Notes under the pieces: model-generated
What the model saw: the letters and a program-made list of their open reading frames with translations, nothing else
Databases searched by the model: none
Told to the model about the DNA's origin: nothing
Shown: piece by piece, positions 11,512 through 63,788 of the stretch
How positions within the stretch are numbered: position 1 is the stretch's first letter
Layout of the letters: every line of letters begins with the position of its first letter
Translations under genes and position numbers: made by a program
Assembly: GCF_037042905.1 (NCBI RefSeq)
Contig: NC_087257.1
Location: forward strand, 13,764,001-13,828,000
DNA from: Lytechinus pictus
Lineage: Eukaryota
DNA length: 64,000 nucleotides
Direction: 5' to 3'

Positions 11512-12023
11512 ATGGACGGCCATGGCGACCATGAAGTGGACATGCCAAACGGAGACGCGACCACGCCGCCAGCTCAGGGGGAGGACAACGGTCAAGCAGC
11601 GGCTGAAGGTGGACTCAATAACCTACCACCAGCTCAAACGGGTCTCGCCTACTACCTCTCCTTCTTCACCGGAAATGTGAAGCCCCTCAGTGACTGGGCC
11701 TATGACAAACCGATACCTGTTCGGTTCCCGATAGCTTGCACTAGAGCCTTAGGACAGCCCCTTTTCGTGAACAACCCGTTCAGCGGACTCCTGATCCTGG
11801 TCGGACTGTTTGTGCAGAGTCCCTGGCGGACTATCTGCGGACTCTTGGCCATGTTGTCGGCCCAGACTACGGGTCTAGTCCTGCATCTAGATCGCGATGG
11901 CTTGGACAACGGAGCGTTCTCGTTTAACGGTCTCTTAGTTGGATATGTGTTGGCATCAAGCTCTGCTGCGGGGGATTGGTATGGGTACCTGGTTTTCCCC
12001 GTGGCCATCTGTGGTATGTTTAG
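11512..12023 (+). CDS. SLC14A: Urea transporter coding exon 1
   Basis: ATG in context CAACATGG at 11512; translation MDGHGDHEVD...FVNNPFSG...PVAICGMF; donor AG|GTAAGC at 12023/12024. Confidence 0.93.
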
Positions 12024-42110: not shown

Positions 42111-42117
42111 TATAAAT
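42111..42117 (+). promoter_or_regulatory. TATA box, SMB gene copy A
   Basis: TATAAAT 116 nt upstream of the ATG, conserved in copy B. Confidence 0.6.
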
Positions 42118-42226
42118 TCAGGGCTAGTGGAGCTGGGAAATTCATAGTCAGCGTCGTTTGGGATACTGACAACAAGCAACAAGACATCTTCCAGAGCTCT
42201 GAGCTGATAGCATCATCATCGTCATA

Positions 42227-45167
42227 ATGGAAAGCAGAAAAATTCTAGCCGTGCTCGTTGCCATCTCGGTTCTTGCTGTTTGTGCCGCCCAGGCTCGTAA
42301 GTATAGGCCCTATAGATTTCCCCCCACCTTTTGAGGGTTGCTGAGAAGCTTAAAAGAGCAATATTCACGAGTTTTACTCTTGGAGGAAAATATCAGGGAC
42401 ACCTTGTATTATCGTCAAATAAGGATGCTTTGTTCCTTACCAAAGTTGCTTTGAGATTTCCACTTTAATGCCATAATTATTGCAGGTGAAAAGGTTAATA
42501 GGGTTATTTTAATTTGAAGTAACTATGGAAAAGTAATCAGTTAATTATTGTTTTTTGTTTTATAATACGTAATGGCCATTTTTTTTGGAGTTCGTGGCAG
42601 CCTACGGCTTTCCCTGATAAATGTCTTTAATGAAAAGTTGAATTCCTAGTATAAGCGTTAGAAAGAGACTCACTATTGTAAAACTTTTTGTGACTTGAAG
42701 TGGCATTGTCCATGAATCTCATCTTTTCGGTTTTACAATTGAGCAGCAAATGGATTTCGGCCTAGACCGGGACCAAGACCGAGACCAGAAAACGGCACCA
42801 GTCCTGGACCACGACCGAGACCAGAAAACGGCACCAGTCCAGGACCACGACCGAGACCAGAAAACGGCACCAGTCCTGGACCACGACCGAGACCGGGAAA
42901 CGGCGGAGGAAACCACTCTCAACCTATCAACGGTCCCAGACCAGGCAACCACTCCCAACCTATCAACGACACCAGACCGGGCAACGGCACTGGCAACTAT
43001 TCAAGGGACGGTCATATCGTAAAGCGCCAGACATTTTTCTCTACCTTATCACCCCCATCAGGAAATGGATCTGGAAATCACTCACACCCTCCTCCTCCTC
43101 CTCCCCCAACACCAAGCAACAGTTCTGCTCCACCACCACCACCACCACCACACAACAGCACAGCTCCCCCTCCACCAACCAACAGTTCTCTCGCTCCCCC
43201 ACCCTCAAACAAGAGCCTTCCCCCTCCCCCACCATACAACAGCTCTTTCGCGCCCCCACCCTCGTACAACAGCACCACCCCTCCTCCACCATTAAACAGT
43301 TCTTTCGCTCCTCCTCCCCCGTCCAATAGCTCTGCCCCTCCCCCTACATCAGGAACCAACAGCCCATCGCATCCCCCACCTCCCAGTAGCCCTCCTTCAG
43401 GTGAGTGAACTGTATAATCTTATTTCATACAACATTATTTATCACGGCATATACCACTTCTATATTGACAAGAATAAAGTAAAAGTCCGACGTTGGTGTA
43501 GCTTAGGCGGTAGACGAGTCGTCATAAATCCCGGAGCATTTCAAGAAATAAATTTTCAGCGATTTTCCTTGACGACTATTATGAGCTTCTGAATTCACTG
43601 GATCTGAATGGCTCAGAAAAATGATGAAAATTACAGACTTTTTGCATAATGAATCACTCGTTCGGGCTTCAACCCAAGACGATATTATTTGTTTGTAATA
43701 TTTTGTAATAGAATGTAGTATTACATAAAAAAACAGACCACTTATTTGTGTTTTCGCATTTTACCCCTTTATTCTATGCGCTATATTGCATTTCAAGATT
43801 TATTTTCTTTTTGTAAATGCAATGAATTACCACGTCATTATCATTATCACCAAGGTATAAAGAATGATAAAGCATAATAACAATCAGTCGTGTTTCATTT
43901 TAATTATTTAAATTTCCTAAGTACATGAAGTATGGAGTAGAATGAAGTAAGAACATACGTTGATATGGTTAGAAAGAATAATGATGGGACCTACAATGCT
44001 TGAATACGCAGTTACTGCTCAATAAGGGTCGCCAAACGTATACTAAGAACAAAGAAGCCGGATTTGTTTTCTACATTCTTATTTCAATAAATTTTTATTC
44101 AGAAGTTAAGGGCTTGTAAAAGAGATAGGTTATGCTAACACGTAATAAACTGATATTTCACTTGCGCTCTTACTCTTTACTTGGAGAATAGGGCTATCCA
44201 GTTGTTCGTAAAATTATTGGTGAGTTTCTAAGCATCTTTACAAAACGGCCCCTCTCCACTTTGTAAGATGTAGACCCTTTCACTCTGTGTCATGTCGTGT
44301 GCTCTTCTCCACATTTTTGTTCACATTACAGGCCGATCGTGTAGGGGAAGATGTGGTAACTATAATGGTTCCAGACAGTGCCAATGCGACAATCAATGCA
44401 GGATGTACAGAGACTGTTGCCGTGATCTAGAATCTGAGTGCCAGGTTAGACGAATAATATTTGCGATTTTGTAGACGTATGTGTCGGCCAATATAGACCT
44501 TTTGCAGTGACGTCATCACGCCGCCATCTTTAGAGGCTGAAGTCATTGCCTTGCATGCTTTGTTGATCTGCAGCTGGAGTAGCTCTGAAGGAGGGCGCTA
44601 TGAGCTTATGACGTGATATGCATAATGTCTATTCAAAACTCCGGTTCTCCTTTATTTTTAGTGCCAATTGCGTGCTTTTCCGTGTTTAAGATATTTCGTT
44701 TTTTTCTGTAACATGTCAAATGACATGATAATACAAAACAAAAATAAATCGTAAATAGAGATCATATCTTACCCCAAATAAGTTTTGCACACCTGTATGC
44801 TAAACAATACGAACAGGATTGTTGTGCAAATTTGACAAATCACAATTCGATGTTCCGAATGTATGGTCGCATAATTGTATGGTGAATATTATCATTAAAT
44901 AATCGGATAAAAAATGAAAGAGAATCGAAATCGGAGTTGAGATGTTAAATTCATTGCATCTCAAAGAATGATAGGAGTACAGTGATTACTATGCATTTGG
45001 AAGAATCAATATTCCAAAATTATTCTCATTCCTATCTTTACCACTTTCTAGTGGACTCAACCTTTAAATGCAAATGTAAAATATAATTTTTACCTTTCAA
45101 CATATGAAAACTTATTTTCCACTTTTTGCATTTGTTTTTTTCTGTCCTTATTCAGAACCGGAACTAG
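42227..45167 (+). CDS. Secreted Pro-rich, N-glycosylated somatomedin-B-domain protein, copy A, 282 aa: join(42227..42296,42747..43400,44332..44444,45156..45167)
   Basis: Exon 1 is a signal peptide MESRKILAVLVAISVLAVCAAQA with donor C|GTAAGT. Exon 2 is an open 654-nt frame PNGFRPRPGPRPRPENGTS...HIVKRQ...PPPPSSPPS with donor G|GTGAGT. Exon 3 is an 8-Cys SMB domain SCRGRCGNYNGSRQCQCDNQCRMYRDCCRDLESECQ. Exon 4 is NRN*. Phases 1,1,0 are consistent and all splice sites are kept in the paralog. Exon 4 is the least certain. Confidence 0.85.
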
Positions 45168-47812
45168 GCGGATTCACCGACTCGTTGATTTGACGTTGGA
45201 ATCGGACCAGGAATTGGACAGGGAATACGGATCAGTAAACAAAAGAAAATTACTTAGCTCTTAGGCCTTTAACAAGCCTATGTCTTTTACGATGAATACA
45301 AATAACATATTGAAATTTGATATCAATCAAACTGTTTGATTGTTGATTGATTTGATTGATAAAAAAGTTTTAAACTTTCGTTTTCCCTATATATGTAGGT
45401 ATTGTACAACATGATTTACAAATTAGATGTAGATAAAAAAAAATTGTAGGCATGATACCCCCTCCCAAAAAAAGAGAATTATGACAAAACTATTCTTCTC
45501 TTCTCATAATCTTTGAAATATTAGTATGTCCATTTCTCGACTTTGCGAATTTGAATTCCTTGCTTTCAGAAGTAACGATTCATCAGCACACTAAATCGTC
45601 TTGTTGGAAAAAAAATCAATGTACAGTTCTGATGGAGGAAAGAAAGTCTTGATGGGTTGGCCTAGGTTAGCCTTCTCAGCCTGAGTAATAACGGTCGATT
45701 TTTATTGCTTTCCCGCTATAGCACCGAAATGAAACATTCTTTTAGGTACCAAATAGATTACTGTCCCCAGCAGTCGTCTTAAGTTAAATGAAACATGCCA
45801 ACCTCTTCCTAACGTTGGCTATTTAGGACTATTTATATATCCTACTCTTTCGGGAATCAATCAACATGAATTTCGGCGTCGGGTTTATAGTATAATTTCG
45901 ATAATAAACATTTGCAGAAATCAGAAACTCAAGCGCCTCGTTTTCTTCTTTGGAGGGTCATGTTATTCATTTAAGCTCTCCTTTGATTGCTGGTTTTTAT
46001 ACTTTATCCATGAAGTTAAACAGTAACATTAATTTGTGTGGGTCCAATCATAGTAAAGAAACATTTCGTGTAAGTGTGGAGGTGTGAGTGTATTCGAAGG
46101 GCAATGATACAGAGAGAGAGAGAGAGAGAGGGGTGGGGGGAAGACGCATAAAGTTTGAGCGTGACACCAACAAATTGGGGTGCCATGGTGTAGGTGTGTT
46201 TTGCAATTACCCGCACAGTCAATATATGACTTAAACACGAACTTCACATTTAAATTTCATATTTAAACGAGGACACACAGCGAAAATATGACGCTCTCAG
46301 ATTGTTAATCTCTCCAAATTTTCCCAAACCATACGGATATTATTATGCAGGGAGGGTGTCATTTAACAAGAAATGTAAAAGTACATCTTTGCTTTATGTC
46401 CTCAGTTGTAAGGTGAAACTTTCAAACAATCCTCAGATGACCTGATTCCCACAGGCTCGAAATACTACGGTTATTTTGTGAAGTACTTCTGAAAATCATG
46501 TCCTCAATTGCTGTCAATAATTGTGAGTGTGTTTGTGTGCACAGAAGAAAGAGATAGAAAGGGAGGGTGGGTGGGGAGGGGGGGGTGTTGTGGTATACAG
46601 GTGATTATAGGTCTAATGAAATTATATAGAATATTTGCTTTCTTCTCTCATCTATAGAATCACATCATTATAATTTATAATTACCATTCCTACTTCTCTG
46701 CATGTATTCCTCCCTGTTCCCTCTCTTATTCGTCCTTTTTTTCCCCTCCACACCTTTTCTCCCTGACAGGGTAGAGGCATGGAATGATAAAACAGCCGAC
46801 GGATTGAGTTATCATTTTCGTCGAATTGTAAAGCCTAAAACAATACTGTAAAATTAATCAATAACATATTTTTTCACAATAAGATTTTTTTTTTCTTAAA
46901 AGTGTTTCGATTTTAAAGCCCGTTCACAATTAATTCACAATAACAATTTGACTTACATTAATCGGGTATCCATTCTAACGATTACAGATAGTAAAGATTG
47001 CTGAAAAAAACATTTTTTTTAATACAAATATCCAAAGCCGTCATTATTTTTTATTGCCTTCTTTATTCTGTTCATCTCTTTCATCGTATATTTTTTCGTT
47101 TTTGTTTCTTAATATTTTCAGATTTCCTTCCCGTATTCATTTTCTTACCCTTCTCTTTCACGTACCCCTTCCTATTTTACTTTCTTTTTTTGTCTTCATA
47201 ATCATCTTCTTTTTTCTCGCTAGTCTTCTCTTCCGTTTTCACATTTTTTATCTAAAGAATGTAAAACAAACCGATCAAAACATAGTCATTCCAGAATGGG
47301 AATGCTTGTAATTGTTTTTCATGGGGCAGAAGTTGTTCCAGGTGTTTCGGTAGAAAAAAAAAAAAATCCGTTCCAACCCCCATCGGAACAATTTTGGTAC
47401 CCTTCCCAGTCCGAAATCCTGGATCAGCCCATGCATATTTCATGTCATCAGATTATATTGGAGCTATCATGATTTTAAAATAGTCATCAATCAATGCCAA
47501 CCTGTTAATACTACCTAATGCTATCTTATAAATCCTCACAAATAAAGGAGGTTCTTTTCGGAAGATATCAACCTCATATTGATTCGAAATAAGACTTTGA
47601 AAAAAAAAAATATTTGTCTTTGCGTTTCATAATGTGCCAATTCCTTGTCCAATTAATTTCTAACCTTGATGATGATGATGATGATGGTTAATGGTATTTG
47701 CATGGCTTTATATAGGCCCATCAATTTGATTTAAATCATTCGATGGCCATGGATGATTGGAGAAAATGTCATATTTTCATGAGAATACGCAAACCTCGGA
47801 ACGGTAATAATA

Positions 47813-47929
47813 GGGTCCCGTAACAAAAAGGTTGTCAATCGTACACTAGATTGAAGGACGTTATAGTCAATGGAATCAATCGTAGAAAACTGTTCTACTA
47901 TCATTGTTAAGCTTTGTGTTACGAGTCCT
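47813..47929. mobile_element. Short MITE in a unit-B-specific block
   Basis: GGGTCCCGTAACAAAAAG / CTTTGTGTTACGAGTCC imperfect TIRs. Confidence 0.55.
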
Positions 47930-49824
47930 AGATCTGTGTGCAAAATTCTTTCATGCGACACCACGCTTGTGAGATTAGAAAATCCCGTGCTTTCATGTAC
48001 ATACGACTGGTCATCACAGCATGCCTGCCTGATCCCGGGACTGTACTCTGGCTGCTTGGCTGGAGATATGAGAAACACTCGGCGTACATAGTGTGGTATG
48101 ACATGGATAAGGAAGTGTTTTTTTTTTTTAAACAAATCGAGTATATATTAAGTGAGGAAAACTCACTGAATTAAGGCTAAGTATATATCATTACAGTCCA
48201 TCGAATCGATATTGCATCAAACGTGGATTATTGGGGGATCACTGGCAAAGGCATTGGTCATATTCACCTCTCCAGCTAAACCATCTCGCATGCGTTATCA
48301 GCACAGCAAATATGTCTAAAAACGATCCAGATTTTTTTATTTTGCTGGCTCGATCCCCTACACAAACGGCAAGCCATCTTGCACAAAATGTGAAGGACAT
48401 ATATGCCCCGTGTGCATTGTTGGCATCATGTTTTACTTTCCCCGAAATGGGGATTAGATTTCAAATTCCCGGGGGACCAATTCCAACCAGGCGCGACCAT
48501 GGGGTTTCGAAAAGTACCCTAGGCAAGTCTTTTCCATGTTATGAAAATGTATCCCTTAACAAGTATTGGCGTGTGAAACCCTACCCTTAACAAGTATTGG
48601 AAATTTGACCGTAAACACTTAGCTTTCCTAACAAAATATATACCCTTTTTCAGTTTTTTGTATGGCGTTTTTCACACCCTTCTTACGTTACATGCGTAAC
48701 GTGCCCACTTTTGAAAAATAAATTCCTTTTTACGCGTGGTCGCGCCTGGTATCCACTCGTCAGTGGAAGTGGATCCCCTGGCACCTCGAGCTATAAGAGG
48801 TCAATTGTAGCTCTGGAAACTCATCCTAAATCGGATTTGTCGCTGTCGCAGTCAGAATCATGCACACGAGCCGCAGATTAAATGATACCGTTGTGGATGC
48901 GATAGGTAAATTCTCATGTCACACAACTTGTATTGCAGGACAATCTCTTACGACGGGCCCAAAAGTCTCATCCAAAATCAAATTCGTCGTAAAGGTCCGT
49001 TTGCGCAGCGATAGGTCCGGACTACTGATCACATGACGGCCAGTTGCACTACCAGCATATTTAAAGTAGGCGGGGGGGGGGGGGGGTGGATGAAGGGCAA
49101 GATAAAACGTGTATTTGGGCAAGGGCGACCTAGTAAAATGGAAGAAAATCTTTTAAGCTTTGAAGAGTGAAATATGGTGTGGTTTTTTTTTTGAGAGAGA
49201 ACTTTGTTTGAATATGAAGACGACAAGAACACACTTGTCGAATTTTCGAGATTGGGTGATCCTTTTCAGAACCAATACTTGCCCAAGAAAGATATATGGT
49301 GTACTGTGAAACCTACTACACAATATGATACTTGTGACAGCAAATAATTTCTATGCAGAGAGAGCTGTACAATTTCACAATCATTTTTCATAATTTCTTC
49401 ACGGGGAGAGGGGGATTGGTGCAATGTCCCCCCCTTTTGGTGCCGCCACTCCTGACGTCATGGTAGTGGATGTGTGTGAAGGTTTGGTTGTGTGTGAAGG
49501 TTTGGTTGTGTGTGAAGGTTTGGTTGTGTGTAACAAGATGAGGTTGTGTGTAACAGGATAAGGTAGTATGTGTGGAAGTAGGAAGAATTTTGTGCGTGTG
49601 TTTGTGATTGTGAGTTCATGTATTCTGGTGAGGATGTGGGTGTGCGTGTGTTGGTGTCTGTGTGTCGTTTGTGGTTGCAATGAACAGAAATGTGTGAATG
49701 TATATCGTGTGTTTTCGAGTGTGTGTGTGTTTCAAGGACTGGTGCGCCTCGTGTGTGTATGTCAGGTTGCGGTTAACTGTGTGTCTCAGAAGGCGTGTTC
49801 GGTTTGCCTTTGAATATCACATTA

Positions 49825-50425
49825 AGGATAAGTCCACCCGCAACAATAAGTTGGTTTGAATAAAAAGAGAAAAATCGAAGTTACAAGCATAACACTAAAA
49901 ATTTCATCAAAATCGGACGTAAAATAAGAAAGTTATGGCATTTTAAACTTTTTTAAACTTTCAATATTCACATCCTGTTCGGTATGTAATTAATGAGAAA
50001 ACTGATGACATCATCCACTCACTATTTCTTTTGTATTTCATTACATGGAATATGAAATATTCTAATTTTCTCATCATTGTCATGTGAAACAAAGTCAGAT
50101 ATCTTCCTGAACATGGGTAATTATCATTGTTATAACATTTCTGGTTGAAACAAGAGGGTCCTTAATGCCAAATCTTTAAGAAATTAAATATTGTACAATT
50201 CACACACTAAAAAAAAAAGAAATAGTGAATGAGGGACATCATCAACTCTCTCATATAAATATCACTAAGTTGTGCATATAACTGTTTTGTGAAAAGTAAG
50301 CGAAATTTTAAAATGTCGTAATTCTTTCTTATTTTACATTCGATTTTGATGAAATATTCAGTGTTATGCTTTTTGATTTTCCTCTTTTAATTCAAATCAA
50401 CTTTTATCTGGCGTGGACTTGACCT
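49825..50425. mobile_element. Second copy of the Kolobok-type element
   Basis: Collinear with 5307-5907; ends GTGGACTTGACCT|TTAA; absent from duplication unit A. Confidence 0.85.
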
Positions 50426-51800
50426 TTAAGAGAAAGCGATGCTTGATAATTTAGAACTATTATGAGGAATATGACAATAACAATGACAATAATGAGGATG
50501 GTATGATAACAACTATAAGTTAACATTTTAGTTTGATTCTTCCATAAAACCTCTGGCTGGGTTGATAAATCAAAGTATTAACAATAGTACAAAGAATGCT
50601 GATTTGAACTTTTGATGTGTAAATTATTAAGAGAGAACCAAAGCTCGAGTTTTGACTATATTTTATTTGTGTGGATGCACGAACAAAAAATATGCATGGA
50701 TGTAATAGTTTCTTTATTGTCATTACAAAAATACATAAATTATCTGTTACTAATTCAATTCGTAAAAAAAATTAAACTTTTCATATAAATTCACTATTTC
50801 GGTGGCCAGGGGGGGGGGGGGGGGGGGGCAACAGCCAACAATTTCACGGTCATATCATGGTATGAACAATATTTTTTTATGATTGTCCCCGAGCATTATG
50901 GAGAAGCCCAATGCGTGATAAGTAAAAAAAGAGGGGGCACAGCATAGCGCGCAGGGCAAAAATTCCCGGGCGAGCGAAGCGAGCGAGATAAAAAAAATCA
51001 CATTTTCATGAGAATCTAACTTTCAGATTGAGTTTGACATGGTATTAAGAAAATAACAGATTTTACATCTTCCTTTCCTTTCCTTTTCTCTCATGTTTTC
51101 TTTTTTGTTCTGGGTTTTATAACTTTTGGGGCAAGCGCTATGTGGATCGGGTCCGGGGCATTGGCGGCACTAGGATTTTTAACTTAGGGAGCATGGAGGG
51201 GGGGGGGGGCAAGACAAATATTTTGCCTATTTCACAAAATCGAGCGAGAAGCGCGAGCTATTTTTTTAAATGTAGACCCTCAGGCTGATTTGAAAAGGGG
51301 CCTGTTAAGGACTAGCAGTTTGTAGTGGGTAATGAAGATGATATCTTACCAAATAAATAATGAGATGATAACTGGGCGATCTAAGCACTTTTTTGTAATC
51401 ATGAACTGGATGGCTATCTATTTACACAATTGATGCGAGCGCGTAGCGTGAGCTGAAAACTTTTGATTTATGAAAATTATGAATACGCAGGGTGTGTATC
51501 TCGCTAAAAAGAATAATAAAAACTTTAATCGAGAGAGGCATATTGACTTGAACAATATATTTTTCAATTCAATTCAATTTGCATTTATTTCATTCTCGAT
51601 AAAAACAACTATAAAGCAAGGTATGAGAAACAATATATTTACAAGCAAGAGTAAACAATGAAAATAAAATGGGGAACTGCATAAATAAAGCCAAGTGGCC
51701 TTATGTAAGCGCAGTTCCCAGAACATTGATAACATGACATGGCATAGAGAAACAATAAGATAAAGAATTTTAAACATGATATATAAACAACAAACAAAAA

Positions 51801-52059
51801 TGTTATGATTGGGAAATCATAGTAATACTAAAGTGGAAGGACTTTAGATGATTTCTGTGAAACTTCTTTGTGTGAGACATCACAAGATGATGACTCAGGT
51901 AACCACACATTCCAATGAGATGAAGTACTCTGTACTACACTCTCTATCCATGCTAAAATGAAAGTTAATTGTACAAATGAATTTAGTTCCAATAAAGTAG
52001 TCAAACTATACACACGTGTCTCTCAAGCCTCCTAAATATTGTGTAACTGGAACTCTACA
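51801..52059 (+). repeat. 5' LTR (259 bp)
   Basis: TGTTATGATT...AACTCTACA; identical by eye to 56712-56970; contains TGACTCA (51891) and AATAAA (51991). Confidence 0.97.
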
Positions 52060-52072
52060 TGGTGTCAGAAGT
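52060..52072 (+). other. Primer-binding site, probably tRNA-Leu
   Basis: TGGTGTCAGAAGT directly after the 5' LTR, complementary to a tRNA 3' end ...ACUUCUGACACCA as found in animal tRNA-Leu. Confidence 0.8.
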
Positions 52073-52099
52073 TAAAAAACTGACTGTTATCTAGTGAAA

Positions 52100-55000
52100 A
52101 TGGATGGCATGCGACCACCAGAAGCCTTTTCTCTACAGGGCAACATCACAGATAACTGGAAGAGGTGGAAACAGCGTTTTGAGCTGTATTTAACAGCTAG
52201 TGGACTTGACAAAAAGGACTCAAAAGTACAAACAGCGACACTGCTTCACATTATTGGTGAAGAGGCGTTAGAAATTTACAACACATTTTCTTTCGAGCAG
52301 GTAATTTCATCGTCAGGACAACCTGTAGCACCGACATTAAAAGACTTGCTGGAGAAATTCACTGTACATTTTGAGCCACAGTCCAACGTGACTTTTGAGA
52401 GACATGTATTCAACACAAGATTTCAACACGAAAACGAGTCATTTGACCAGTTCGTCACAGACTTGAAGAAAAAAGCTAAATCATGTGAGTTTGAGCATCT
52501 TCGAGACAGTCTGACAAAAGACAGAATTGTTGTTGGAATTCGTGATGATGGTACCAGAGCACGACTACTCAGAGAAAAAGACTTGTCTTTGGAGAAAGCA
52601 ATAGACATTTGCAAGGCAACTGAGATAACGTCACAACATATTGCAGAGCTGAAGCCCAAACAGAACATTCATGCAATGCAGGCGACATCGATGAATAGGA
52701 AGACATGCCCGAAGTGTGGAAATAAGCATCCACCCAGAAAATGCCCTGCATATGGCAAAGAATGCCATACCTGCAAAAAGAAAAACCATTTCAGCTCCAT
52801 GTGTAGAGATCAGGATCGAGATAATGACAGAGACCGATTATCAAGGAAGGTTCCATTTGGAGGACAAACTCGCAACAAAAAGGGTCATCGCCCCAGCAAA
52901 AGAGGGATCCATGACATCAAACAGGACAGTGAATACAGTGATGCCGACAGTGAAGAGTTCCACGTCGACGCCATCAATGGAGTCCAGCAGAAAGAGGAGA
53001 AATCGAAAAAAGAATGGTATGTCAATCTCACATTTCTTTCTGACAAAAACAGGCATAAAGAAAAAGCAACAACCAACAGTGCTCAATTCAAAATTGATAC
53101 AGGTGCTCAATGCAATATACTGGCTGCTAAGGCTTATAAAAAGCTAGGGATGCCAAAATTTGGCAAGTCAAAAGCAAGATTGATGTCATATACAGAACAC
53201 GTTGAAAAATCACATTTGGGAAAATGTACCCTAACATGTGTGAGGAAGAACAAATTCCATAACATTGAGTTTGAGGTGATTGATAGAGATGCCCAATCCA
53301 TACTTGGACTTGAGTCATCTGAATTACTAGGTTTTGTAAAGAGGGCAGATTCAATCAAAGATGATAATTTGGCAAATCAATACACAGACGTGTTTGAAGG
53401 CCTTGGATGTATGGGGGAACCACAGCATTTAGATGTTGATAAATCAATCAGTCCAACAATCCATCCTCCAAGGAAAGTCCCAGTAGCAATAAAACAAGGT
53501 GTGAAAAATGAGCTCAATAGAATGGAAGAAATGGGTGTGATAGTAAAGCAAACAGAACCAACACAGTGGGTAAGTTCGATGGTCACAGTAGCAAAGAAAG
53601 GGAAAAATAAGGTAAGAATATGCCTAGACCCTAGGGACTTAAATAAAGCAATAAAAAGACCACACTACCCGATGAAGACAATTGATGACATTACTGATAA
53701 TCTAGCCGGCGCACAGATCTTTAGTACATTAGATGCTAATTGCGGTTTCTGGCAGATTCCTCTTGATGACGAGAGTTCAAAACTTCTCACATTTAATACG
53801 CCCTACGGCAGATATAGATTTCTTAGATTACCATTTGGAATCAACTCTGCTAGTGAGATATTTCAGAGAATTATGACCGATATGTTTAGCGACATAGAAG
53901 GTGTAGAGGTTCTGGTAGATGACATTCTAATATATGGCCCCTCAGAAAGTGTCCATGATCAAAGGTTGAAGCAAGTACTAGAAAGGTGCAGAAAAAAATG
54001 CATCAAACTCAACCCAGACAAATGCCATATCAGGCAAACACAGGTCACATACATGGGACACATAGTATCTACAGAAGGACTAAAACCAGACCCAAAGAAA
54101 ATAGAGGCAATCACAAAGATGCCTACCCCACAGAGTAAAAAGGGTGTTCAACAATTCCTAGGAATGGTAAACTACTTAGGCAAGTTTATCCCTAACTTGA
54201 CAGAGAAATCAGCACCAATTAGAGTACTACTAGAAAAAGATGTGGCATGGCACTGGGATGACAAAAAAGAAGCAAGTTTCAAAGCGCTTAAAGAAGCGGT
54301 AACAAATGCTCCAGTGTTAAAGTACTACGATGTAAGTAAACCAGTCAAGTTAAGCGTAGATGCATCGCAAGCAGGCACGGGCGCAGTCCTACTACAAAAT
54401 GGACATCCAGTGGCATATGCGTCAAAAGCATTTACCGATGCTCAGACACGATATGCCCAAATTGAGAAGGAGCTAGCCGCGATTGTATTTGGTTGTAAGA
54501 AATTTCACCAATATATATTTGGACGCACAGTGGATGTAGAAACGGATCATAAACCACTTGAAACGATATTCAAGAAACCACTGCATGCTTCCCCACCGCG
54601 ACTCCAAAAAATGCTCCTCAATCTGCAAAACTATGATCTGCGCGTAACATATGAAAAGGGCGTCAACCTTTTCATATCCGACTGCCTCAGTAGAAATTTC
54701 CTAGCCAATCAAAGTGATGATGTTGATGTGGAAGAGATACCCATATGCATCATTGACAAACTTCCCATCGCAGACGAACGAATGAAAGAAATAAAAGATG
54801 AAACTAAAAAGGATGAAATGCTACAAAAGCTCCGTAAAGCAATCCTAACTGGATGGCCAAATGAAAAAAGGGAAGTCAGTGAAGAAATTCGACAATATTG
54901 GGAGTATAGAGAACTACTTACAGTAGAAGATGAATTAATATGCAAAGATGCGCGAGTGATAATACCAAAATCACTTAGAAAAAAGATGATCGGAAAAGTA

Positions 55001-56059
55001 CATTGTCATGCACACCAAGGAATAGAAAAGACTAAGAAATTAGCGCGAGACATCATGTACTGGCCCGCCATGTCAGCACAAATTGCAGACATAGTTGCTT
55101 CATGTGAAATATGCAACACATATAAGCAAAACAATGCAAATGAACCAATGATTGGTCACACAAAACCAGACCAACCATGGCAAAAAGTAGGCTCAGATAT
55201 CTTGGAATTAAATGGAAAGTACCATTTAATACTGGTAGACTATTACTCTAGTTTCTTTGAACTTTGCGAACTAAAAAACATGACAACATCAACAGTCATA
55301 AAGCACTGCAAAGAGCATTTTGCTAGATACGGGATACCGAACGAATTCGTATCAGATAATGGACCATGTTATGCTTCGAGCGAATTTAAGAAATTCAGCC
55401 AGGAGTATAAATTCAAACATGTAACTAGCTCCCCTGGATATCCCAAATCCAATGGGAAAGCTGAAAGCGCTGTCAAAATAGCAAAAAATTTGCTGCGCAA
55501 ATCTAGCGATATACATCTAGCACTGCTACAATATCGCAACACACCTCTGGAAGGTTTAGACGCTTCTCCTGCCCAACTACTAATGGGACGAAGGACGAGA
55601 ACACCCCTTCCAACAAACAAGAGGTTATTAAAACCTAAAACGCAACAGAACATTAACACAAAGCTCAAGAAACAACAAGAGAAACAGAAAATGTTCTATG
55701 ACAAAACAACACATTCTCTCCCCAACCTGGTTATTGGAGATGTTGTTAGGATGCGAAGTACAAGAAATCCTAAAATTTGGCAAAAAGCAATCGTTGTGAG
55801 GATTTGTAAAGAGCCACGCTCATACATTGTACAAGCTGAAGGCGTAGACTACCGTCGAAATCGTAAAGATCTCAACAAAACAAAAGAAAGTCTGAATCCA
55901 TTACATCAAAATGATGAATACAATAATCAGACTCAAACTTCTCATGACAACCCACCAAATACCCCTCAAAACACATCTCAACGCACAACCCAGCCGAAAC
56001 AAGGTTACACTACCAAATATGGCAGACATATCAAACCACCAGAGAGATATGGGACATAA
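52100..56059 (+). CDS. gag-pol: Gag-Pol polyprotein (1319 aa from the ATG at 52100)
   Basis: Tandem Zn knuckles CPKCGNKHPPRKC and CHTCKKKNHFSSMC (Mag-type); protease IDTGA; RT LPFG and VLVDDIL; RNase H DAS, YAQIEKE, TDHKPL; integrase HHCC, GSD, SDNGP, SNGKAESAV. No stops. Confidence 0.97.
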   Translation: MDGMRPPEAFSLQGNITDNWKRWKQRFELYLTASGLDKKDSKVQTATLLHIIGEEALEIYNTFSFEQVISSSGQPVAPTLKDLLEKFTVHFEPQSNVTFERHVFNTRFQHENESFDQFVTDLKKKAKSCEFEHLRDSLTKDRIVVGIRDDGTRARLLREKDLSLEKAIDICKATEITSQHIAELKPKQNIHAMQATSMNRKTCPKCGNKHPPRKCPAYGKECHTCKKKNHFSSMCRDQDRDNDRDRLSRKVPFGGQTRNKKGHRPSKRGIHDIKQDSEYSDADSEEFHVDAINGVQQKEEKSKKEWYVNLTFLSDKNRHKEKATTNSAQFKIDTGAQCNILAAKAYKKLGMPKFGKSKARLMSYTEHVEKSHLGKCTLTCVRKNKFHNIEFEVIDRDAQSILGLESSELLGFVKRADSIKDDNLANQYTDVFEGLGCMGEPQHLDVDKSISPTIHPPRKVPVAIKQGVKNELNRMEEMGVIVKQTEPTQWVSSMVTVAKKGKNKVRICLDPRDLNKAIKRPHYPMKTIDDITDNLAGAQIFSTLDANCGFWQIPLDDESSKLLTFNTPYGRYRFLRLPFGINSASEIFQRIMTDMFSDIEGVEVLVDDILIYGPSESVHDQRLKQVLERCRKKCIKLNPDKCHIRQTQVTYMGHIVSTEGLKPDPKKIEAITKMPTPQSKKGVQQFLGMVNYLGKFIPNLTEKSAPIRVLLEKDVAWHWDDKKEASFKALKEAVTNAPVLKYYDVSKPVKLSVDASQAGTGAVLLQNGHPVAYASKAFTDAQTRYAQIEKELAAIVFGCKKFHQYIFGRTVDVETDHKPLETIFKKPLHASPPRLQKMLLNLQNYDLRVTYEKGVNLFISDCLSRNFLANQSDDVDVEEIPICIIDKLPIADERMKEIKDETKKDEMLQKLRKAILTGWPNEKREVSEEIRQYWEYRELLTVEDELICKDARVIIPKSLRKKMIGKVHCHAHQGIEKTKKLARDIMYWPAMSAQIADIVASCEICNTYKQNNANEPMIGHTKPDQPWQKVGSDILELNGKYHLILVDYYSSFFELCELKNMTTSTVIKHCKEHFARYGIPNEFVSDNGPCYASSEFKKFSQEYKFKHVTSSPGYPKSNGKAESAVKIAKNLLRKSSDIHLALLQYRNTPLEGLDASPAQLLMGRRTRTPLPTNKRLLKPKTQQNINTKLKKQQEKQKMFYDKTTHSLPNLVIGDVVRMRSTRNPKIWQKAIVVRICKEPRSYIVQAEGVDYRRNRKDLNKTKESLNPLHQNDEYNNQTQTSHDNPPNTPQNTSQRTTQPKQGYTTKYGRHIKPPERYGT

Positions 56060-56711
56060 ACTAAAAAAAAAAAAAAAAAAAAAAAAAAAACATGAAGAGA
56101 GAAGGGAAAGTAAAGTGATTAAAATCATTCAATGAAAGTTTAAGTTCTGCCTGACCCAGCCAAGTTGAGCATTGTTTACTTTGCAGTTCTTAATATTTTA
56201 TGTAATGTAGTATTAGACTATTATTATTTTGTTTCTTAGTTTGGAAATTATTTTGTTGTAAAAATAATGCCTAAATATGTCTGGAAGGAAGTCTGAGTAT
56301 GAGATATTATTATTATCTGAATAGTTTAAATGGACACTGAATTCAGCCATGAAGAACCCTATGGACGATATACAGAAGTTGAAGAAATTTGAACAATAAT
56401 TATTAAGAAGAATAAATTGGACACTGATTAACAAACTTCATCTCAGGATAAATGTATGCATGTTTATGTTTTACCAATGCTATGTTTATATGATTCTTTG
56501 TATTATTATATTGAAGAATAATCTTTTATTGTATGCTCTTTTATTCATCTTGAGTGTACAATCATACAAAATCAAATTTGTTGAAATGAAATGAAATGTT
56601 AATAATCACAGCATCAAATTTCTTTGAAGAAGATTCAACAAATCGTTTCTAAAAACCTTATTGATAATTCTGAATTTTTTAGTTGTGAAAATTCATAACT
56701 GAAAAGGGGGA

Positions 56712-56970
56712 TGTTATGATTGGGAAATCATAGTAATACTAAAGTGGAAGGACTTTAGATGATTTCTGTGAAACTTCTTTGTGTGAGACATCACAAGATG
56801 ATGACTCAGGTAACCACACATTCCAATGAGATGAAGTACTCTGTACTACACTCTCTATCCATGCTAAAATGAAAGTTAATTGTACAAATGAATTTAGTTC
56901 CAATAAAGTAGTCAAACTATACACACGTGTCTCTCAAGCCTCCTAAATATTGTGTAACTGGAACTCTACA
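56712..56970 (+). repeat. 3' LTR (259 bp)
   Basis: Preceded by the polypurine tract GAAAAGGGGGA (56701-56711) and followed by TSD AAAAA. Confidence 0.97.
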
Positions 56971-58912
56971 AAAAACACAAACAGAAAAACCAACAAAAAA
57001 GGTGTCAATCTAGAAGAAAAAAATAACTACATATATTTAAGATATAGGAACTGCTTCAATCTTTCTTGAATGACCTAACAGACTTGCTTTCAATTACATC
57101 TCTAGGGGTGGTGTTCCAAAAGCCTCATGTGAGCAAATAATTTTCTTATCTCAGTCAACATTTACTGCGAGCGCGTAGCGCGAGCGAAATTTTGAATTTT
57201 ATATTATGACATGAAAGATTTGTGTAAGTGAAAAAAAATGTTGGGAGCTAACAGTGAATGGATGAGAAAATTTTCAAAGTGTAAAGAACGAAAATGTTGT
57301 TTTGGAGCATTTTGCAGTTTTAGTAGGATACCTATGACAACATTTACTATACATTTGTTGATGTTTCAAAATTTCGGGGGGGGGGGTGCAATGGGGCAAA
57401 TGCCCCGTGGTTGCCGCTACTGGTGTGGGGCGGAGCCCCCGGAACGTCGTGATGTTTTTAAACATTGCAGATGGCCACTTTTTTTTATCAAATCACGGGT
57501 ACATGCACAACACATTAACAAAATCGCAGAACCGAGCCACAAAATTTTGGCCTTTTAAAATGATTTTGAAAATAAATTCATATTATGTGATAGCATACCT
57601 TTGGAAATTTAGCATGAAGAGTTTTTTTTGCGATAAATCTAGCAAGCATGAAGCTTTACTTAGGTTAGGACATGATATAGGAGGATATCACTAACCCTTG
57701 GCTGAGGATATTACTAACCCTTGGCTAAGGATTTTTTGTCCTGATTGCGACCATTATTGCATAAAATTCAGCAAGCTTAATGTAATAGACGCCATCCACC
57801 TTTCTTCCAGTTCTTTATATTTTTCAATCCTCGGCAGCCCGGTCGTGTTCTTAGGTTCTTTTCCTTTTTTTCTTGTACCTTTTCTTCATGTTCTCATTTT
57901 CCAATTTTGTTTTTGCTCTACTATCATTTCCCTTTTATTTTTGCCTCGGGTCATATCTTTTATTTTATATCTCTCTCTTGATAATCATGCTAATTAATTA
58001 GTATTTCAGGATATTTTGTACTTCCTCACAGTCATGTTCTTCTTTCCTTCCTTTTCCCGCTTTACTTCAATCTTCTCTATTTATGTTCTTTCCCTTTCTT
58101 TTCATTTTCCCTTTTCCCTTTCCTCTTTTTTTCCTTCCCTTTCCTTGCATAGGCAATGCCATTGAAGAAAATTACTTGTATATACATTGTATTTGCGTTG
58201 AAAGATTTGAAACATTTCACATATTATTATTATTTTTTTATAATGTCAAAGGACTTGACATGAAACATCGTCAACAAATATAACGAGTAGGCCTATAGGT
58301 TTATTCTTTAACGACGTTATCAATTCCCTAAGGATGTGGGTGAAGGAGAAATCGTGAACCCTTTCCGGTTTTGGTCCCAACTTCAGTGTTTCAAGTTCAA
58401 TGAAATTCTTTTTAATTTTTCCCTACAAAGCGCCTCCCCTGTGTGGTGGAGCCACTGCAAAAAAAATTAATAAATGAATAAAATTTAAAAAAATGTTGAA
58501 ACAATAGTAAATTTAGTGTTCCGATCATATCCAAGAGTATACAATGGAACCAATCCCGAGTATTAACACCCCTGCAATCGAAGATCAATAGTTTCATATT
58601 ATTCAAGGTAGGACTAAACAATCATATCGTAACATACTTCGAGATATCTGATTGTGTATCAACACTCCACGCCAGACAAACGTAATTAAATACATCAGAT
58701 CCAGCTTCAAGCTTAATACGAAAAGAGCGATTGCTTGTACTGAACTTCGCGTTCCAAGTAAAAAGTAAGAGAGGATGGCCAGTGCTGCACTCGTAGAAAC
58801 AGACAAGAACACCTGTGGTTTCTCAAACATCGCACCTTGAAATGAATACTTTGTACACTCCTAGTCGTATACTTTTCGAAGCTACCTTGCAAAATTTAGA
58901 GGCCAGAAAATG

Positions 58913-58919
58913 TATAAAT
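58913..58919 (+). promoter_or_regulatory. TATA box, SMB gene copy B
   Basis: TATAAAT 116 nt upstream of the ATG, conserved in copy A. Confidence 0.6.
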
Positions 58920-59028
58920 TGAGGGCTGGTGGAGCTGGGAAATTCATAGTCAGCGTCGTTTGGGATACTGGCAACAAGCAACAATACATCTTACAGAGCT
59001 CTGAGCTGATAGCATCATCATCGTCATA

Positions 59029-61974
59029 ATGGAAAGCAGAACAATTCTAGCCGTGCTCGTTGCCATCTCGGTTCTTGCTGTTTGTGCCGCCCAGGCTCGT
59101 AAGTATAGGCCCTATAGATTCCCCCCACCTCTTGAGGGTTGCTGAGAAGCTTAAAAGAGCAATGTTCACGAGTTTTACTCTTGGAGGAGAATATCAGGGA
59201 CACCTTGTATTATCGTCAAATAAGGATGCTTCGTTGCTTACCAAAGATGCTTTGAGATTTCCACTTTAATGCCATAATTATTGCAGGTGAAAAGGTTAAC
59301 AGGGTTATTTTAATTTTAAGTAACTATGGAAAAGTAATCAGTTAATTATTGTTTTTTGTTTTATAATACGTAATGGGCAATTTTTTAGGAGTTCGTGGCA
59401 GCCTACAGCTTTTCCTGATAAATGTCTTTAATGAAAAGTTGAATTCCTAGTAAAAGCGTAAGAAAGAGACTCACTATTGTAAAACTTTTTGTGACTTGAA
59501 GTGGCATTGTCCATGAATCTCATCTTTTCGGTTTTACAATTGTGCAGCAAATGGATTTCGGCCTAGACCGGGACCAAGACCGAGGCCAGAAAACGGCACC
59601 AGTCCTGGACCACGACCGAGACCAGAAAACGGCACCAGTCCAGGACCACGACCGAGACCAGAAAACGGCACCAGTCCTGGACCACGACCGAGACCGGGAA
59701 ACGGCGGAGGAAACCACTCTCAACCTATCAACGGTCCCAGACCAGGCAACCACTCCCAACCTATCAACGGCACCAGACCGGGCAACGGCACTGGCAACTA
59801 TTCAAGGGACGGTCATATCGTAAAGCGCCAGATATTTTTCTCTACCTTATCACCCCCATCGGGAAATGGATCTGGAAATCACTCACACCCTCCTCCTCCT
59901 CCTCCTCCCCCAACACCAAGCAACAGTTCTGCTCCACCACCACCACCACCACCACCACCACACAACAGCACAGCTCCCCCTCCACCAACCAACAGTTCTC
60001 TCGCTCCCCCACCCTCAAACAAGAGCCTTCCCCCTCCCCCACCATACAACAGCTCTTTCGCGCCCCCACCCTCGTACAACAGCACCACCCCTCCTCCACC
60101 ATTAAACAGTTCTTTCGCTCCTCCTCCCCCGTCCAATAGCTCTGCCCCTCCCCCTACATCAGGAACCAACAGCCCATCGCATCCCCCACCTCCCAGTAGC
60201 TCTCCTTCAGGTGAGTGAACTGTATAATCTTATTTCATACAACATTATTTATCACGGCATATACCACTTCTATATTGACAAGAATAAAGTAAAAGTCGGG
60301 CGTTGGTGTAGCTAAGGCGGTAGACGAGTCGTCATAAATCTTGGAGCATTTCACGAAATAAATTTTCAGCGATTTTCCTTGACGACTATTATGAGCTTCT
60401 GAATTCACTGGATCTGAATGGACCAGAAAAATGATGAAAATTACAGACTTTTTGCATAATGAATCACTCGTTCGGGCTTCAACCCAAGACGATATTATTT
60501 GTTTGTAATATTTTGTAATAGAATGTAGTATTACATAAAAAAGAGAGTTATTTGAGTTTTCGCATTTTACCCCTTTATTCTATGCGCTATATTGCATTTC
60601 AAGATTTATTTTCTTTTTGTAAATGCAATGAATTACCACGTCATTATCATTTTCACCAAGGTATAACGAATGATAAAGCATAATAACAATCAGTCGTGTT
60701 TCATTATTTAAATTTCCTAAGTACATGAAGTATGGAGTAGAATAAAGTAAGAACATACGTTGATATGGTTAGAAAGAATAATGATGGGACCTACAATGCT
60801 GGAATACGCAGTTACTGCTCAAGAAGTGTCGCGAAACGTATACCAAGAACAAATAAGCCGGATTTTGTTTTCTACATTCTTATTTCAATAAATTCTTATT
60901 CAGAAGTTAAGAGCTTGTAAAAGAGATAGGTTATGCTAACACGTAATAAACTGATATTTCACTTGCGCTCTTACTCTTTACTTGGAGGATAGGGCTATCC
61001 ATTTGTTCGTAAAATTATTGGTGAGTTTCTAAGCACCTTTACAAAACGGCCCCTCTCCACTTTGTAAGATGTAGACCCTTTCACTCTGTGTCATGTCGTG
61101 TGCTCTTCTTCACATTTTTGTTCACATTACAGGCCGATCGTGTAGGGGAAGATGTGGTAACTATAATGGTTCCAGACAGTGCCAATGCGACAATCAATGC
61201 AGGATGTACAGAGACTGTTGCCGTGATTTAGAGTCTGAGTGCCAGGTGAGACGAATAATATTTGCGATTTTGTAGACGTATGTGTCGGCTAATATAGACC
61301 TTGTGCAGTGACGTCATCACGCCGCCATCTTTAAAGGCTGAAGTCATTGCCTTGCATGTTTTGTTGATCTGCAGCTGGCGTAGCTCTGAAGGAGGGCGCT
61401 GTGATCTTATGACGTTATATGCGTAATGTCTATTCAAAACTCCGGTTATCCTTTATTTTTAGTGCCACTTGCTTTTCCGTGTTTTAGATATTTCGTATTT
61501 TTCTGTAACATGTCAAATGACATGATAATACAAAAAATAAATCGTAAATAGAGAACATATCTTACCCAAAATAAGTTTTGCACACATGTATGCTAAACAA
61601 TACGAACAGGATTGTTGGGCAAATTTGACCAATCATAATTCGATGTTCCGGAACAATGATTGCATAATTGTATGGTGAATATTCATTAAATCATCAGATA
61701 AAAGATGAAAGAGAATCGAAATCGGCGTTGAGAAGTTAAATTCATTGCATCTCAAGGAATGATAGAAATACAGTGATTACTATGCATTTGTACAAATCAA
61801 TAGTTTACGCTTACTATTCCAAAATTATTCTTATTCCTATCTTTAACATTTTCTAGTGGACTCAACCTTTAAATGCAAATGTAAAATCTCATTTTTACCT
61901 TTCATCATATGAAAACTTATCTTCCACTTTTTGCATTTGGGTTTTTTTCTCTATTTATTCAGAACCGGAACTAG
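59029..61974 (+). CDS. Secreted Pro-rich, N-glycosylated somatomedin-B-domain protein, copy B, 285 aa: join(59029..59098,59548..60210,61133..61245,61963..61974)
   Basis: Same exon structure as copy A, offset ~16.8 kb. Differs by 8 substitutions (K5T, D>G, T>I, P>S and 4 silent) plus 3 extra Pro codons; the frame is intact. Confidence 0.85.
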
Positions 61975-63788
61975 GCGCATTCACCGACTCATTGATTTGA
62001 TGTTGGAATCGGACCAGGAATTGGACAGGGAATACGGATCAGTAAACCACCCCCCAAAAAATAGCTCTGAGGCCTTTAACAAGCCTATGTCTTTTACGAT
62101 TAATACAAATTAGATATTGACATTTGATATCAATCAAACTGTTTGATTGATTTGATTGATACAAAAGTTTTAAACTGTCGTTTTCCGTATGTAGTTATTG
62201 TACAACATGATTTACAAAATAGATGTAGAGAAAATATTGGTGGGCAAGACCCCCCCCCCAACCAAAAAAAAAAAAAAAAAAACTTGATAGTTATAACAAA
62301 ATTATTCTCCTCTACTCCCAATCTTTGAAATATTATCATGTTTGTTTCTCGACTTTGCGAATTTGAATTCCTTGCTTTCAGAAATAACGATTCATCAGCA
62401 CACTTAAATCGCCTTAAAAAAAAAAAAAATCAGTGCACAGTTCTTCTGGAGGAAAGTCTTGATGGGTTGGCCTAGGAAGCCTTCTCAACCTGAGTAATAA
62501 CGGTCGATTTTTTTTTTCTTTTCCGCTATAGCACCGAAATGAAACATTATTACAGATACCAAATAGACAATTGTCCCCAACAGTCGTCTTTAGTGTCCAC
62601 ACGCCCACTTCTTCCTAACGTTGGCTATTTAGGACTATTTATATATCCTACTCTTTCGGGAATTAATCAACCTGAATTGCAATCGGCATCCGGTTTTTCG
62701 TATGATTTCGATAATAAACATTTGCAGAAATCAGAAACTCAAGCGCCTCGTTTTCTTCTTTGGAGGGTCATGTTATTCATTTAAGCTCTACATAATTTGA
62801 TTTCTGTTTGCGACTTTATCCATGATGTTTACGGTAATATTAATTTGTGTGGGTATTGGTGGCATAGTAAAGAAACAGTTACGTGTAGATGTGTGGAGGG
62901 TGTGAGTGCTTTCGAAGGGCAAGGATGTGTAATTGAATCGGATTACACACATATAGAGAGAGAGAGAGAGGGGGGGGGGGGACGCATAAAGTTGGAGTGT
63001 GATACCAACAAATTGGAGTGCGATGGTGAAGGTATGTTTCCGCAATTACGCTACCATGGACCTACTATATAGGTCCATGCCCGTACAGTTTTAAACACGA
63101 ACTTCTCATCTAAAGTTCACATTTAAACCAAACGAGGACAGACAGTGAAGAGAGGACGTCCTCGGATCATTGCTCACCACAGACTTTATCAAACCACACT
63201 ATGGAGAGAAGATGTCCTTTAACAAGATATGTTAAAGGACATCTCTGCTTAAGGACATCTTTGCTTAATGTAAAGATGTCCTCAGTTATAAAGTGAAACT
63301 TAAATTCATATGATACTCAGTTGACCGCTTAAAATCATGTCCTCAAATTCTGTCATTAATTGTGTGTATGTGTGTATGCAGAAAATGAAACTGAGAGGAT
63401 GGGCGAATACAAAATACGTGATCATGGGTCTAATAAAATAAATAGAATGATATTTGCTCTCATCTCTCACCTAAAGAATCAAATCAACATTATTTATGTC
63501 CCATACTCCATCCGTTTTTATTAACCTTTCTACTTCTCTGCATTGTAAAAAAATTCATCCTCCCCCTGTTCCCTCTCCCATCCATCCTCTGTTTTATCCT
63601 TCCACACCTCTTCTCCCTGAGAGCGTAGAGGCGCGGAATGATACAATAGCGGACGGATGAAAATATTATCTTGTTGAACTGAAAATTTAAATGCAATACT
63701 TCAGAATTCATCAAAAATAAGATTTTTTCAAAATAAGAATTTGATGGTTTTTTTTCTTCAAAAAGTGTTTTGCACGTCTTTGTTAATC

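Follow-up and report, generated by a model that had tools for sequence, protein, structure and literature searches.

A 64,000-nt stretch of the Lytechinus pictus genome (contig NC_087257.1, forward-strand positions 13,764,001 to 13,828,000; hereafter the window) carries two tandem four-exon genes, copy A at 42227-45167 and copy B at 59029-61974, both on the + strand, that encode a protein composed of a signal peptide, a long proline-rich region and a single C-terminal somatomedin-B (SMB) domain. Both are real, transcribed genes, and we estimate, with a probability of roughly 0.6, that their product is, as its sequence suggests, an extracellular glycoprotein of a "stalk and knob" design. A first-pass annotation of the window, made from the sequence alone, had placed a tandem gene pair at 42227-61974, and these limits agree with the four-exon model to the base: the ATG of copy A is at 42227 and the stop codon of copy B ends at 61974. 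The copies lie in two duplicated 4.8-kb segments (Table 1), which are 91.4% identical over 4912 columns at an offset of about 16.8 kb.

The exon-intron structure of the two genes could be established in full. Every intron of both copies begins with GT and ends with AG, and the exon 1 donor of copy A is gtaagt, which follows position 42296 in phase 1. The true frame of exon 2 has 221 open codons, among which neither copy has an ATG, GTG or TTG and, because of this, the list of open reading frames (ORFs) shows only "shadow" ORFs of other frames and of the opposite strand at exon 2, exactly as the first-pass annotation had stated for ATG. Exon 4 starts 711 bases past the SMB exon and reads AAC CGG AAC TAG (N-R-N-stop); in copy A the stop codon is followed by a 3′ untranslated region (3′UTR) of about 760 nt and then by AATAAA at 45903-45908. 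The TATA box, the splice sites and the AATAAA are retained in copies A and B, and the predicted proteins have 282 and 285 aa, respectively.

Splicing was seen directly in contigs of run X9, one of four same-species runs of one 2024 study that each held 53-73% of the exon-2 words in a k-mer search. Contigs of X9 and X10, together with the raw RNA runs X14 and X15, were aligned to positions 41901-47900. The X9 contigs bear the joints 42296>42747, 43400>44332 and 44444>45156 (positions after +3 shifts), all of them GT..AG, and the depth of X9 is 38-56 in exons and 2-7 in introns, a difference of about 10-fold. Exon 2, and the SMB exon with its flanks, are each present in only two genomic copies, both of which contain introns, and the joined contigs must therefore represent spliced RNA and not a processed DNA copy. 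At the 5′ end, the depth rises from 0 in 41901-42100 to 37.7 in 42101-42300; over exon 4 it stays at 27-43 up to 45900 and is 2.5 thereafter, the last drop being from 33 to 2.5. No further coding exon was found past exon 4, the X9 coverage stopping soon after the AATAAA (bin 45901-46100). The earlier prediction had allowed that spliced transcripts might be lacking, or that downstream exons might make the gene part of a larger known protein; instead, all three joints are present in the contigs and exon 4 adds only three codons and the 3′UTR. We also considered a main form in which the SMB exon is read on to …QVRRIIFAIL-stop (ORF 44292-44474). This form was rejected, since the extension has intron-level depth only and X9 is spliced at 44444, with a depth of 56 at the joint and about 3 in the intron.

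Copies A and B are both transcribed. Every "other letter" in X9 is the copy-B base (42240 in exon 1; 42969, 43032 and 43060 in exon 2; and in intron 1), and the copy-B base is likewise present at each of the mixed A/B sites at 42183, 42191, 45184 and 45194. Copy A, for its part, is represented by two X9 contigs that show no difference from its 3′UTR over 45264-45833, a stretch in which A and B are about 10% divergent; of the words sampled from copy A exon 4, for the most part 3′UTR, 97% are present in X9. Expression of the pair is very sample-specific and strong in X9 alone. The fraction of gene words was 0.73-0.97 in X9, about 0.5 at a depth of 1-2 in X10-X12, and 0.00 in X24 and X25, which belong to the same study as X9; none were present in three 2023 runs of the species. 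Reads on the gene were also absent from the 2026 raw RNA runs X14 and X15, of which about 6% each was read, a result that speaks for little or no expression in those samples and for nothing beyond them. Intron 3 of copy A contains, at 44493-44590, a dispersed repeat some 95 nt long that is also present at the equivalent place in copy B and has over 50 genomic copies at 82-91% identity; it accounts for a spuriously high RNA depth of bin 44501-44700 as well as for loose contig ends at 44614 and 44748.

The order of parts that had been proposed for the spliced product, with a single SMB domain at the C-terminus, is borne out by the X9 joints and the translation: signal peptide, PGPRPRPENGTS x3, GNHSQPIN repeats, KR, a polyproline/N-x-S/T region, the SMB domain (35 bits against PF01033) and the terminal NRN. 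The signal peptide, MESRKILAVLVAISVLAVCAAQA, is of the n-h-c type and contains the only strongly hydrophobic windows of the protein. It is probably cleaved around residues 20-23; a cut between VCA and AQ is presumably likelier than one between AQA and P, judged by the −3/−1 rule and the disfavoring of Pro at +1. As had also been claimed, the protein has no membrane or glycosylphosphatidylinositol anchor: there is no second hydrophobic 19-residue window, and the C-terminus (…ESECQNRN) is hydrophilic.

The region encoded by exon 2 has about 218 residues, one-third of which are proline. It contains three exact PGPRPRPENGTS units and a fourth, degenerate unit; the part N-terminal to the KR has an isoelectric point (pI) of 12.0. 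The KR site is single, at residues 116-117, and is kept in both copies. About ten polyproline units follow, each succeeded by an N-x-S/T sequon. Within the 282 residues there are 73 Pro (26%), 39 Ser, 27 Asn, 26 Gly and 23 Arg (pI 10.2), and the 19 N-x-S/T sequons, 18 in the exon-2 part and one inside the SMB domain, include none followed by Pro. At the DNA level, exon 2 contains 36-nt tandem units that are 94% and 86% identical and, in the polyproline part, 27-57-nt units, from which we infer that the proline-rich part grew by internal repeat expansion. All four proline codons are in use in exon 2, and the proline stretch is therefore not a plain microsatellite. No Pfam family was found in exon 2, and a single-sequence structure model of the exon-2 part gave no secondary structure and a predicted template-modeling score of 0.12, the outcome to be expected of a stalk with so much proline.

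The domain encoded by exon 3 is a typical SMB domain. It matches PF01033 over profile positions 2-38 of 40 with an E-value of 1.8e-8 and a score above the curated gathering threshold of 23.1 bits, and its eight cysteines follow the spacing C-x3-C-x8-10-C-x-C-D-x2-C-x5-C-C-x-D-x4-C. When the domain was aligned with 20 other SMB domains (21 sequences), the eight Cys, D19 and D31 fell in invariant columns and D27 in a nearly invariant one. The SMB domain of human vitronectin is matched at E 3.6e-6 with 8/8 Cys in register. The fold was confirmed by an AlphaFold model built from the same 21-sequence alignment (predicted local distance difference test score 90), for which the best PDB match was the vitronectin SMB domain 1oc0_B, with a template-modeling (TM) score of 0.86 and a root-mean-square deviation of 1.1 Å, followed by the SMB domains of autotaxin and ENPP1/3. 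The Foldseek E-value for 1oc0_B was a modest 7e-3 because the domain is only 37 residues long. At the vitronectin positions that contact PAI-1 and uPAR in the 1OC0 and 3BT1 complexes (F13, D22, L24, Y27 and Y28), D22 and Y28 are kept, F13 is replaced conservatively by Y, and L24 and Y27 are changed to Q and M.

Could the SMB exon have been acquired recently from another gene of this genome? We rejected this idea: the nearest other SMB exon is only 51-53% identical, the other SMB exons have ordinary surroundings, for example pairs of SMB exons or a long multidomain frame, and no proline-rich exon lies within 1.5 kb of any of them. We infer that the SMB exon is an old, shuffled module that was joined to an orphan stalk.

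The first-pass annotation had described the family as expanding in tandem. This is overstated: there are exactly two copies in the 812-Mb genome, no other duplication was found between or beyond the segments, including the 10 kb past the end of the window, and the flanks of the copies differ by 9-13% and their introns by 3-7%, which together indicate one, not very recent, duplication. Between copies A and B, identity is 99.2% in exon 2, 98.2% in exon 3, 93-97% in introns, 90% in the 3′UTR and 87-91% in the flanks. Substitutions are four times rarer in the coding part (9/837, 1.1%) than in introns (92/2071, 4.4%; Fisher p = 1e-6). The ratio of nonsynonymous to synonymous rates (dN/dS) is 0.34, which comes from 4 + 4 changes and is not significant (p = 0.12). 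The proteins differ by four substitutions and three extra prolines, the latter resulting from indels of 3 and 6 bases in runs of proline codons, where slippage gives multiples of three anyway. A 300-nt stretch across the boundary between exon 2 and intron 2 (43130-43429 and 59940-60239) is 100% identical between the copies, with flanks that are about 10% different, and is a probable gene-conversion tract. The spacer of about 12 kb between the segments is unique and gap-free; the sole N run of the window is at 30841-30970.

Protein searches for relatives were made with exon 2 and with the SMB domain separately. Exon 2, used whole or as residues 1-118 (the non-polyproline part), gave no match at E <= 0.001 or 0.01 in a word-index protein search with 8000 scored candidates each. 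In such a search, low-complexity words may crowd the candidates, but an identical annotated protein would still surface; none did, and the gene therefore appears to be absent from the searched collections. The best ESM Atlas feature score for exon 2, 0.77 for a viral glycoprotein G mucin-like region, was dismissed as a meaningless level that reflects composition only. A HMMER search with the SMB domain over 1.84 billion representatives returned 131 matches, with identities over the domain of at most 63%. Twenty of them were inspected; these were bacterial-looking and mostly had several SMB copies, and a stalk resembling exon 2 was present in none of the 20. Full-text literature searches found nothing that links somatomedin-B with sea-urchin proline-rich or matrix proteins or proteomes. 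The predicted lineage-specific orphan stalk and the known SMB domain thus form an architecture without a match in the searched proteins. The earlier statement that the architecture is unfamiliar holds in that no relative of the stalk and no similar architecture appeared in the proteins and literature searched; a C-terminal SMB domain, on the other hand, is not unique, being found in many bacterial-looking metagenomic proteins. In a closely related species, referred to here as organism A (X1-X8, X13 and X20-X23), 4-20% of the exon-2 31-mers were present in presumed RNA runs, and DNA runs of organism A contained 4% of the 3′UTR words. An orthologue probably exists in organism A, judging from these shared words, and it may be transcribed there.

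Comparison with known proteins gave several partial likenesses. Vitronectin has the same kind of SMB domain (eight Cys, CxCD and DCC motifs, fold) and is likewise of the secreted type, but its SMB domain is N-terminal and is followed by RGD and hemopexin repeats, whereas the urchin SMB domain comes last and RGD and hemopexin are lacking. Lubricin (PRG4) likewise combines SMB with a long, proline-rich, heavily glycosylated (here predicted) and non-globular region in a secreted protein, that is, a brush with a binding end. PRG4, however, has two N-terminal SMB domains, an O-glycosylated mucin region of the KEPAPTT type, several hundred residues long, and a hemopexin domain at its C-terminus; the urchin protein has one C-terminal SMB domain and a 218-residue stalk with N-x-S/T, and the two show no similarity outside SMB. 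By analogy, lubricin may be regarded as the nearest functional counterpart, and SMB is the only domain feature of the vitronectin/PRG4 family that we found: the urchin protein ends three residues past it, and exon 2 holds no Pfam family. The SMB domains of ENPP1-3/autotaxin and ENDOU match in fold (TM 0.66-0.79), and paired SMB exons of their kind occur elsewhere in this genome; in those proteins, however, a tandem SMB pair precedes a phosphodiesterase or XendoU catalytic domain, whereas the urchin gene has a single SMB exon. The metagenomic proteins (e.g., P0105, P0111 and P0121) are short and secreted-looking with SMB last, at 46-63% identity over the domain, but they are bacterial-looking, mostly multi-SMB and without a PRPRP or polyproline-sequon region, and are not orthologues. 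Peptides of the PR-39, Bac5/7 and apidaecin type have PRP/PRPRP motifs and strong basicity in common with the N-terminal 94 residues of the urchin protein; such proline-rich antimicrobial peptides are short and unglycosylated or O-glycosylated, whereas the urchin region exceeds them in length, each of its repeats bears an N-glycan sequon and a Glu, and its release is putative. Extensins and pherophorins, hydroxyproline-rich rod glycoproteins of plants and algae, resemble the urchin protein in that polyproline alternates with short glycosylated motifs at a spacing of about 10 residues and ends in a globular part, as in a rod and knob. The urchin protein differs from them in that it lacks Ser-Pro(3-5) and Tyr cross-link motifs and has N-linked rather than Hyp-linked sites; it is the product of an animal gene, and there is no homology.

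One could envision how such a protein would work. The polyproline segments would favor the polyproline-II conformation, and the sequons, which recur every 9-12 residues, together with Ser/Thr beside Pro as possible O-glycan sites, would clothe it in sugar. The polyproline/N-x-S/T part would thereby become a hydrated rod or brush, extended and heavily glycosylated. The SMB domain at the C-terminus would be the only folded, protein-binding element and might tie the brush to a partner in the matrix or on a surface, as SMB does in vitronectin and the ENPPs. The whole could then belong to the coating or the matrix of one particular tissue or stage. Such a restricted role fits the strong presence of the gene in X9 and its slight presence or absence in the other runs of that study. 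The roles suggested in the first-pass annotation (mucus or cuticle lubricant, adhesive, egg coat, biomineral matrix, immune effector) are guesses.

Several alternative scenarios have to be weighed against that of a stalk-and-knob glycoprotein. One, which we think unlikely, is that the protein is the precursor of a host-defense peptide, in which a cut at the K-R (between …GHIVKR and QTFF…) would free an N-terminal Pro/Arg/Gly-rich part of about 94 residues, with the polyproline-SMB part acting as its carrier or pro-region. The composition of this fragment (23 Pro and 14 Arg per 94 residues, pI 12.0), its four PRPRP motifs in near-identical 36-nt repeats and the conservation of the KR in both copies all speak for such a precursor, and sample-restricted expression would suit an inducible or cell-type-specific effector. 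However, with an N-G-T sequon and a Glu in each repeat, the fragment would be bulky, would bear sugar and would have a weaker cationic character than the known proline-rich peptides, which are only about 15-60 aa long; the KR has no Arg at P4 and is a poor furin site, and the exon-2 protein searches gave no sequence relative. A very unlikely combination of the two ideas is a dual precursor, from which KR cleavage would free a glycosylated Pro/Arg-rich defense peptide while the polyproline N-glycan rod, tethered by SMB, would form an extensin-like brush coat. If this is true, no earlier proline-rich antimicrobial peptide would be known from an echinoderm, and the brush-coat design would be one that is undescribed in animals.

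It is quite unlikely that the protein belongs to the organic matrix of the calcite skeleton, be it that of test, spine, tooth or larval spicule, with basic repeats that would bind mineral or matrix proteins as in the SM50 family. The N-terminal repeats, rich in P, G, N, Q and R with a pI > 10, do resemble the repeats of basic spicule-matrix proteins, but there is no C-type lectin domain of the SM50/SM30 kind, or any other matrix-protein domain, in any exon, somatomedin goes unmentioned in the sea-urchin skeletal proteome papers searched, the locus lies outside any matrix-gene cluster among urea-transporter-like neighbors, and the gene is absent from the X14 and X15 reads and from other runs of the species. 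We give the same low likelihood to a lineage-specific, fast-evolving, gonad-only glycoprotein of the gametes or reproductive tract (egg coat, jelly, testis or seminal fluid). Orphan low-complexity sequence, recent duplication and sample-specific expression are typical of such genes, yet there is no sign of diversifying selection in the four substitutions and three extra prolines between the copies. Finally, it is highly improbable that the locus is a functionless, transcribed low-complexity sequence or an assembly artifact with two alleles placed in tandem. A dN/dS not significantly below 1, in-frame indels that could be due to triplet slippage, and A and B letters in one run, which two alleles would also explain, are what such a locus would show. 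Against it, both copies keep a 282/285-codon frame, the signal peptide, the eight Cys, the splice sites, the TATA box and the AATAAA, divergence between them is four times lower in the coding part than in introns, and a 12-kb unduplicated, gap-free spacer next to only 4.8 kb of duplicated sequence is unlike a haplotype placed twice.

The explanation that we favor, two transcribed genes for a secreted stalk-and-knob glycoprotein, has to contend with several points that weigh against it. X9 is not on record as an RNA run, and its RNA nature is deduced from the splice joints in its contigs and from its profile of depth. The low confidence of the single-sequence model is weak evidence that the stalk is disordered or non-globular. 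Because the contact residues are only partly kept, the binding partner of the SMB domain is not predictable. Lastly, the low coding divergence could stem partly from gene conversion rather than from selection.

The pair would be an example of how a known SMB module, joined to a newly grown repeat exon, gives rise to a lineage-specific secreted glycoprotein. ORF-based views overlook such genes, whose main exon has no start codon and is covered by long shadow frames, and this gene may be missing from public annotation. As an orphan secreted protein, its product is of moderate interest. Lytechinus pictus is genetically tractable, and the two-gene family lies within 20 kb, so that one deletion could remove both copies.

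Table 1. Positions of the two gene copies and of the duplicated segments in the window.
Feature	Position	Strand	Basis or remark
TATAAA box, copy A	42111..42116	+	read in sequence; conserved in B; about 30 bases 5′ of first coverage
Copy A exon 1, coding (signal peptide MESRKILAVLVAISVLAVCAAQA, ends in phase 1)	42227..42296	+	translation; X9 joint 42296>42747; sole strongly hydrophobic 19-residue window
Copy A exon 2, 654 nt, phase 1-1 (PGPRPRPENGTS x3, GNHSQPIN repeats, KR, polyproline/N-x-S/T)	42747..43400	+	translation, X9 joints
Copy A exon 3 (SMB domain, 8 Cys)	44332..44444	+	PF01033; X9 joints 43400>44332, 44444>45156
Copy A exon 4 (N-R-N, stop 45165-45167, 3′UTR, AATAAA 45903-45908)	45156..45930	+	X9 depth; 3′ end approximate
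Copy A exon 4, coding part	45156-45167	+	X9 joint 44444>45156
Copy B exon 1, coding (signal peptide; K5T relative to A)	59029..59098	+	translation; B letter at 42240-equivalent in X9 contig
Copy B exon 2, 663 nt (+3 and +6 nt in proline runs; D97G, T118I, P->S)	59548..60210	+	B letters at 42969/43032/43060-equivalents in X9 contigs, depth 44.8
Copy B exon 3 (SMB; protein identical to that of A)	61133..61245	+	translation
Copy B exon 4 (N-R-N, stop 61972-61974, 3′UTR, AATAAA 62713-62718)	61963..62740	+	B letters at 45184/45194-equivalents in X9, depth 24/56; 3′ end approximate
Copy B exon 4, coding part	61963-61974	+	matches copy A
Duplicated segment A, 4.8 kb (gene, 0.8 kb upstream, 0.3 kb downstream)	41400..46210	+	window self-blastn
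Duplicated segment B, with gene copy B	58202..63049	+	window self-blastn

The genes neighboring the pair are urea-transporter-like; among them, a 199-aa open frame at 11428-12027 (+) contains …NNPFSGLLILVGLFVQSPW…. The spacer between the gene copies holds a complete long terminal repeat (LTR) retrotransposon at 51801-56970 (+) with a domain order of the Ty3/gypsy type. Its 260-nt LTRs are 100% identical and have TG..CA ends, the element is bordered by an AAAAA target-site duplication, and its frame at 52094-56059 encodes an uninterrupted 1321 aa with protease, reverse transcriptase, RNase H and integrase; it looks like a very young insertion. Beyond copy A, a 35-nt piece at 47864-47898 is very deep in every run (1611 in X9, 733 in X10, and about 120 raw reads in each of X14 and X15). 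All of the X14 and X15 reads in the aligned region fell on this piece, and on either side they pass into dissimilar sequence; the piece is part of some abundant repeat or RNA.

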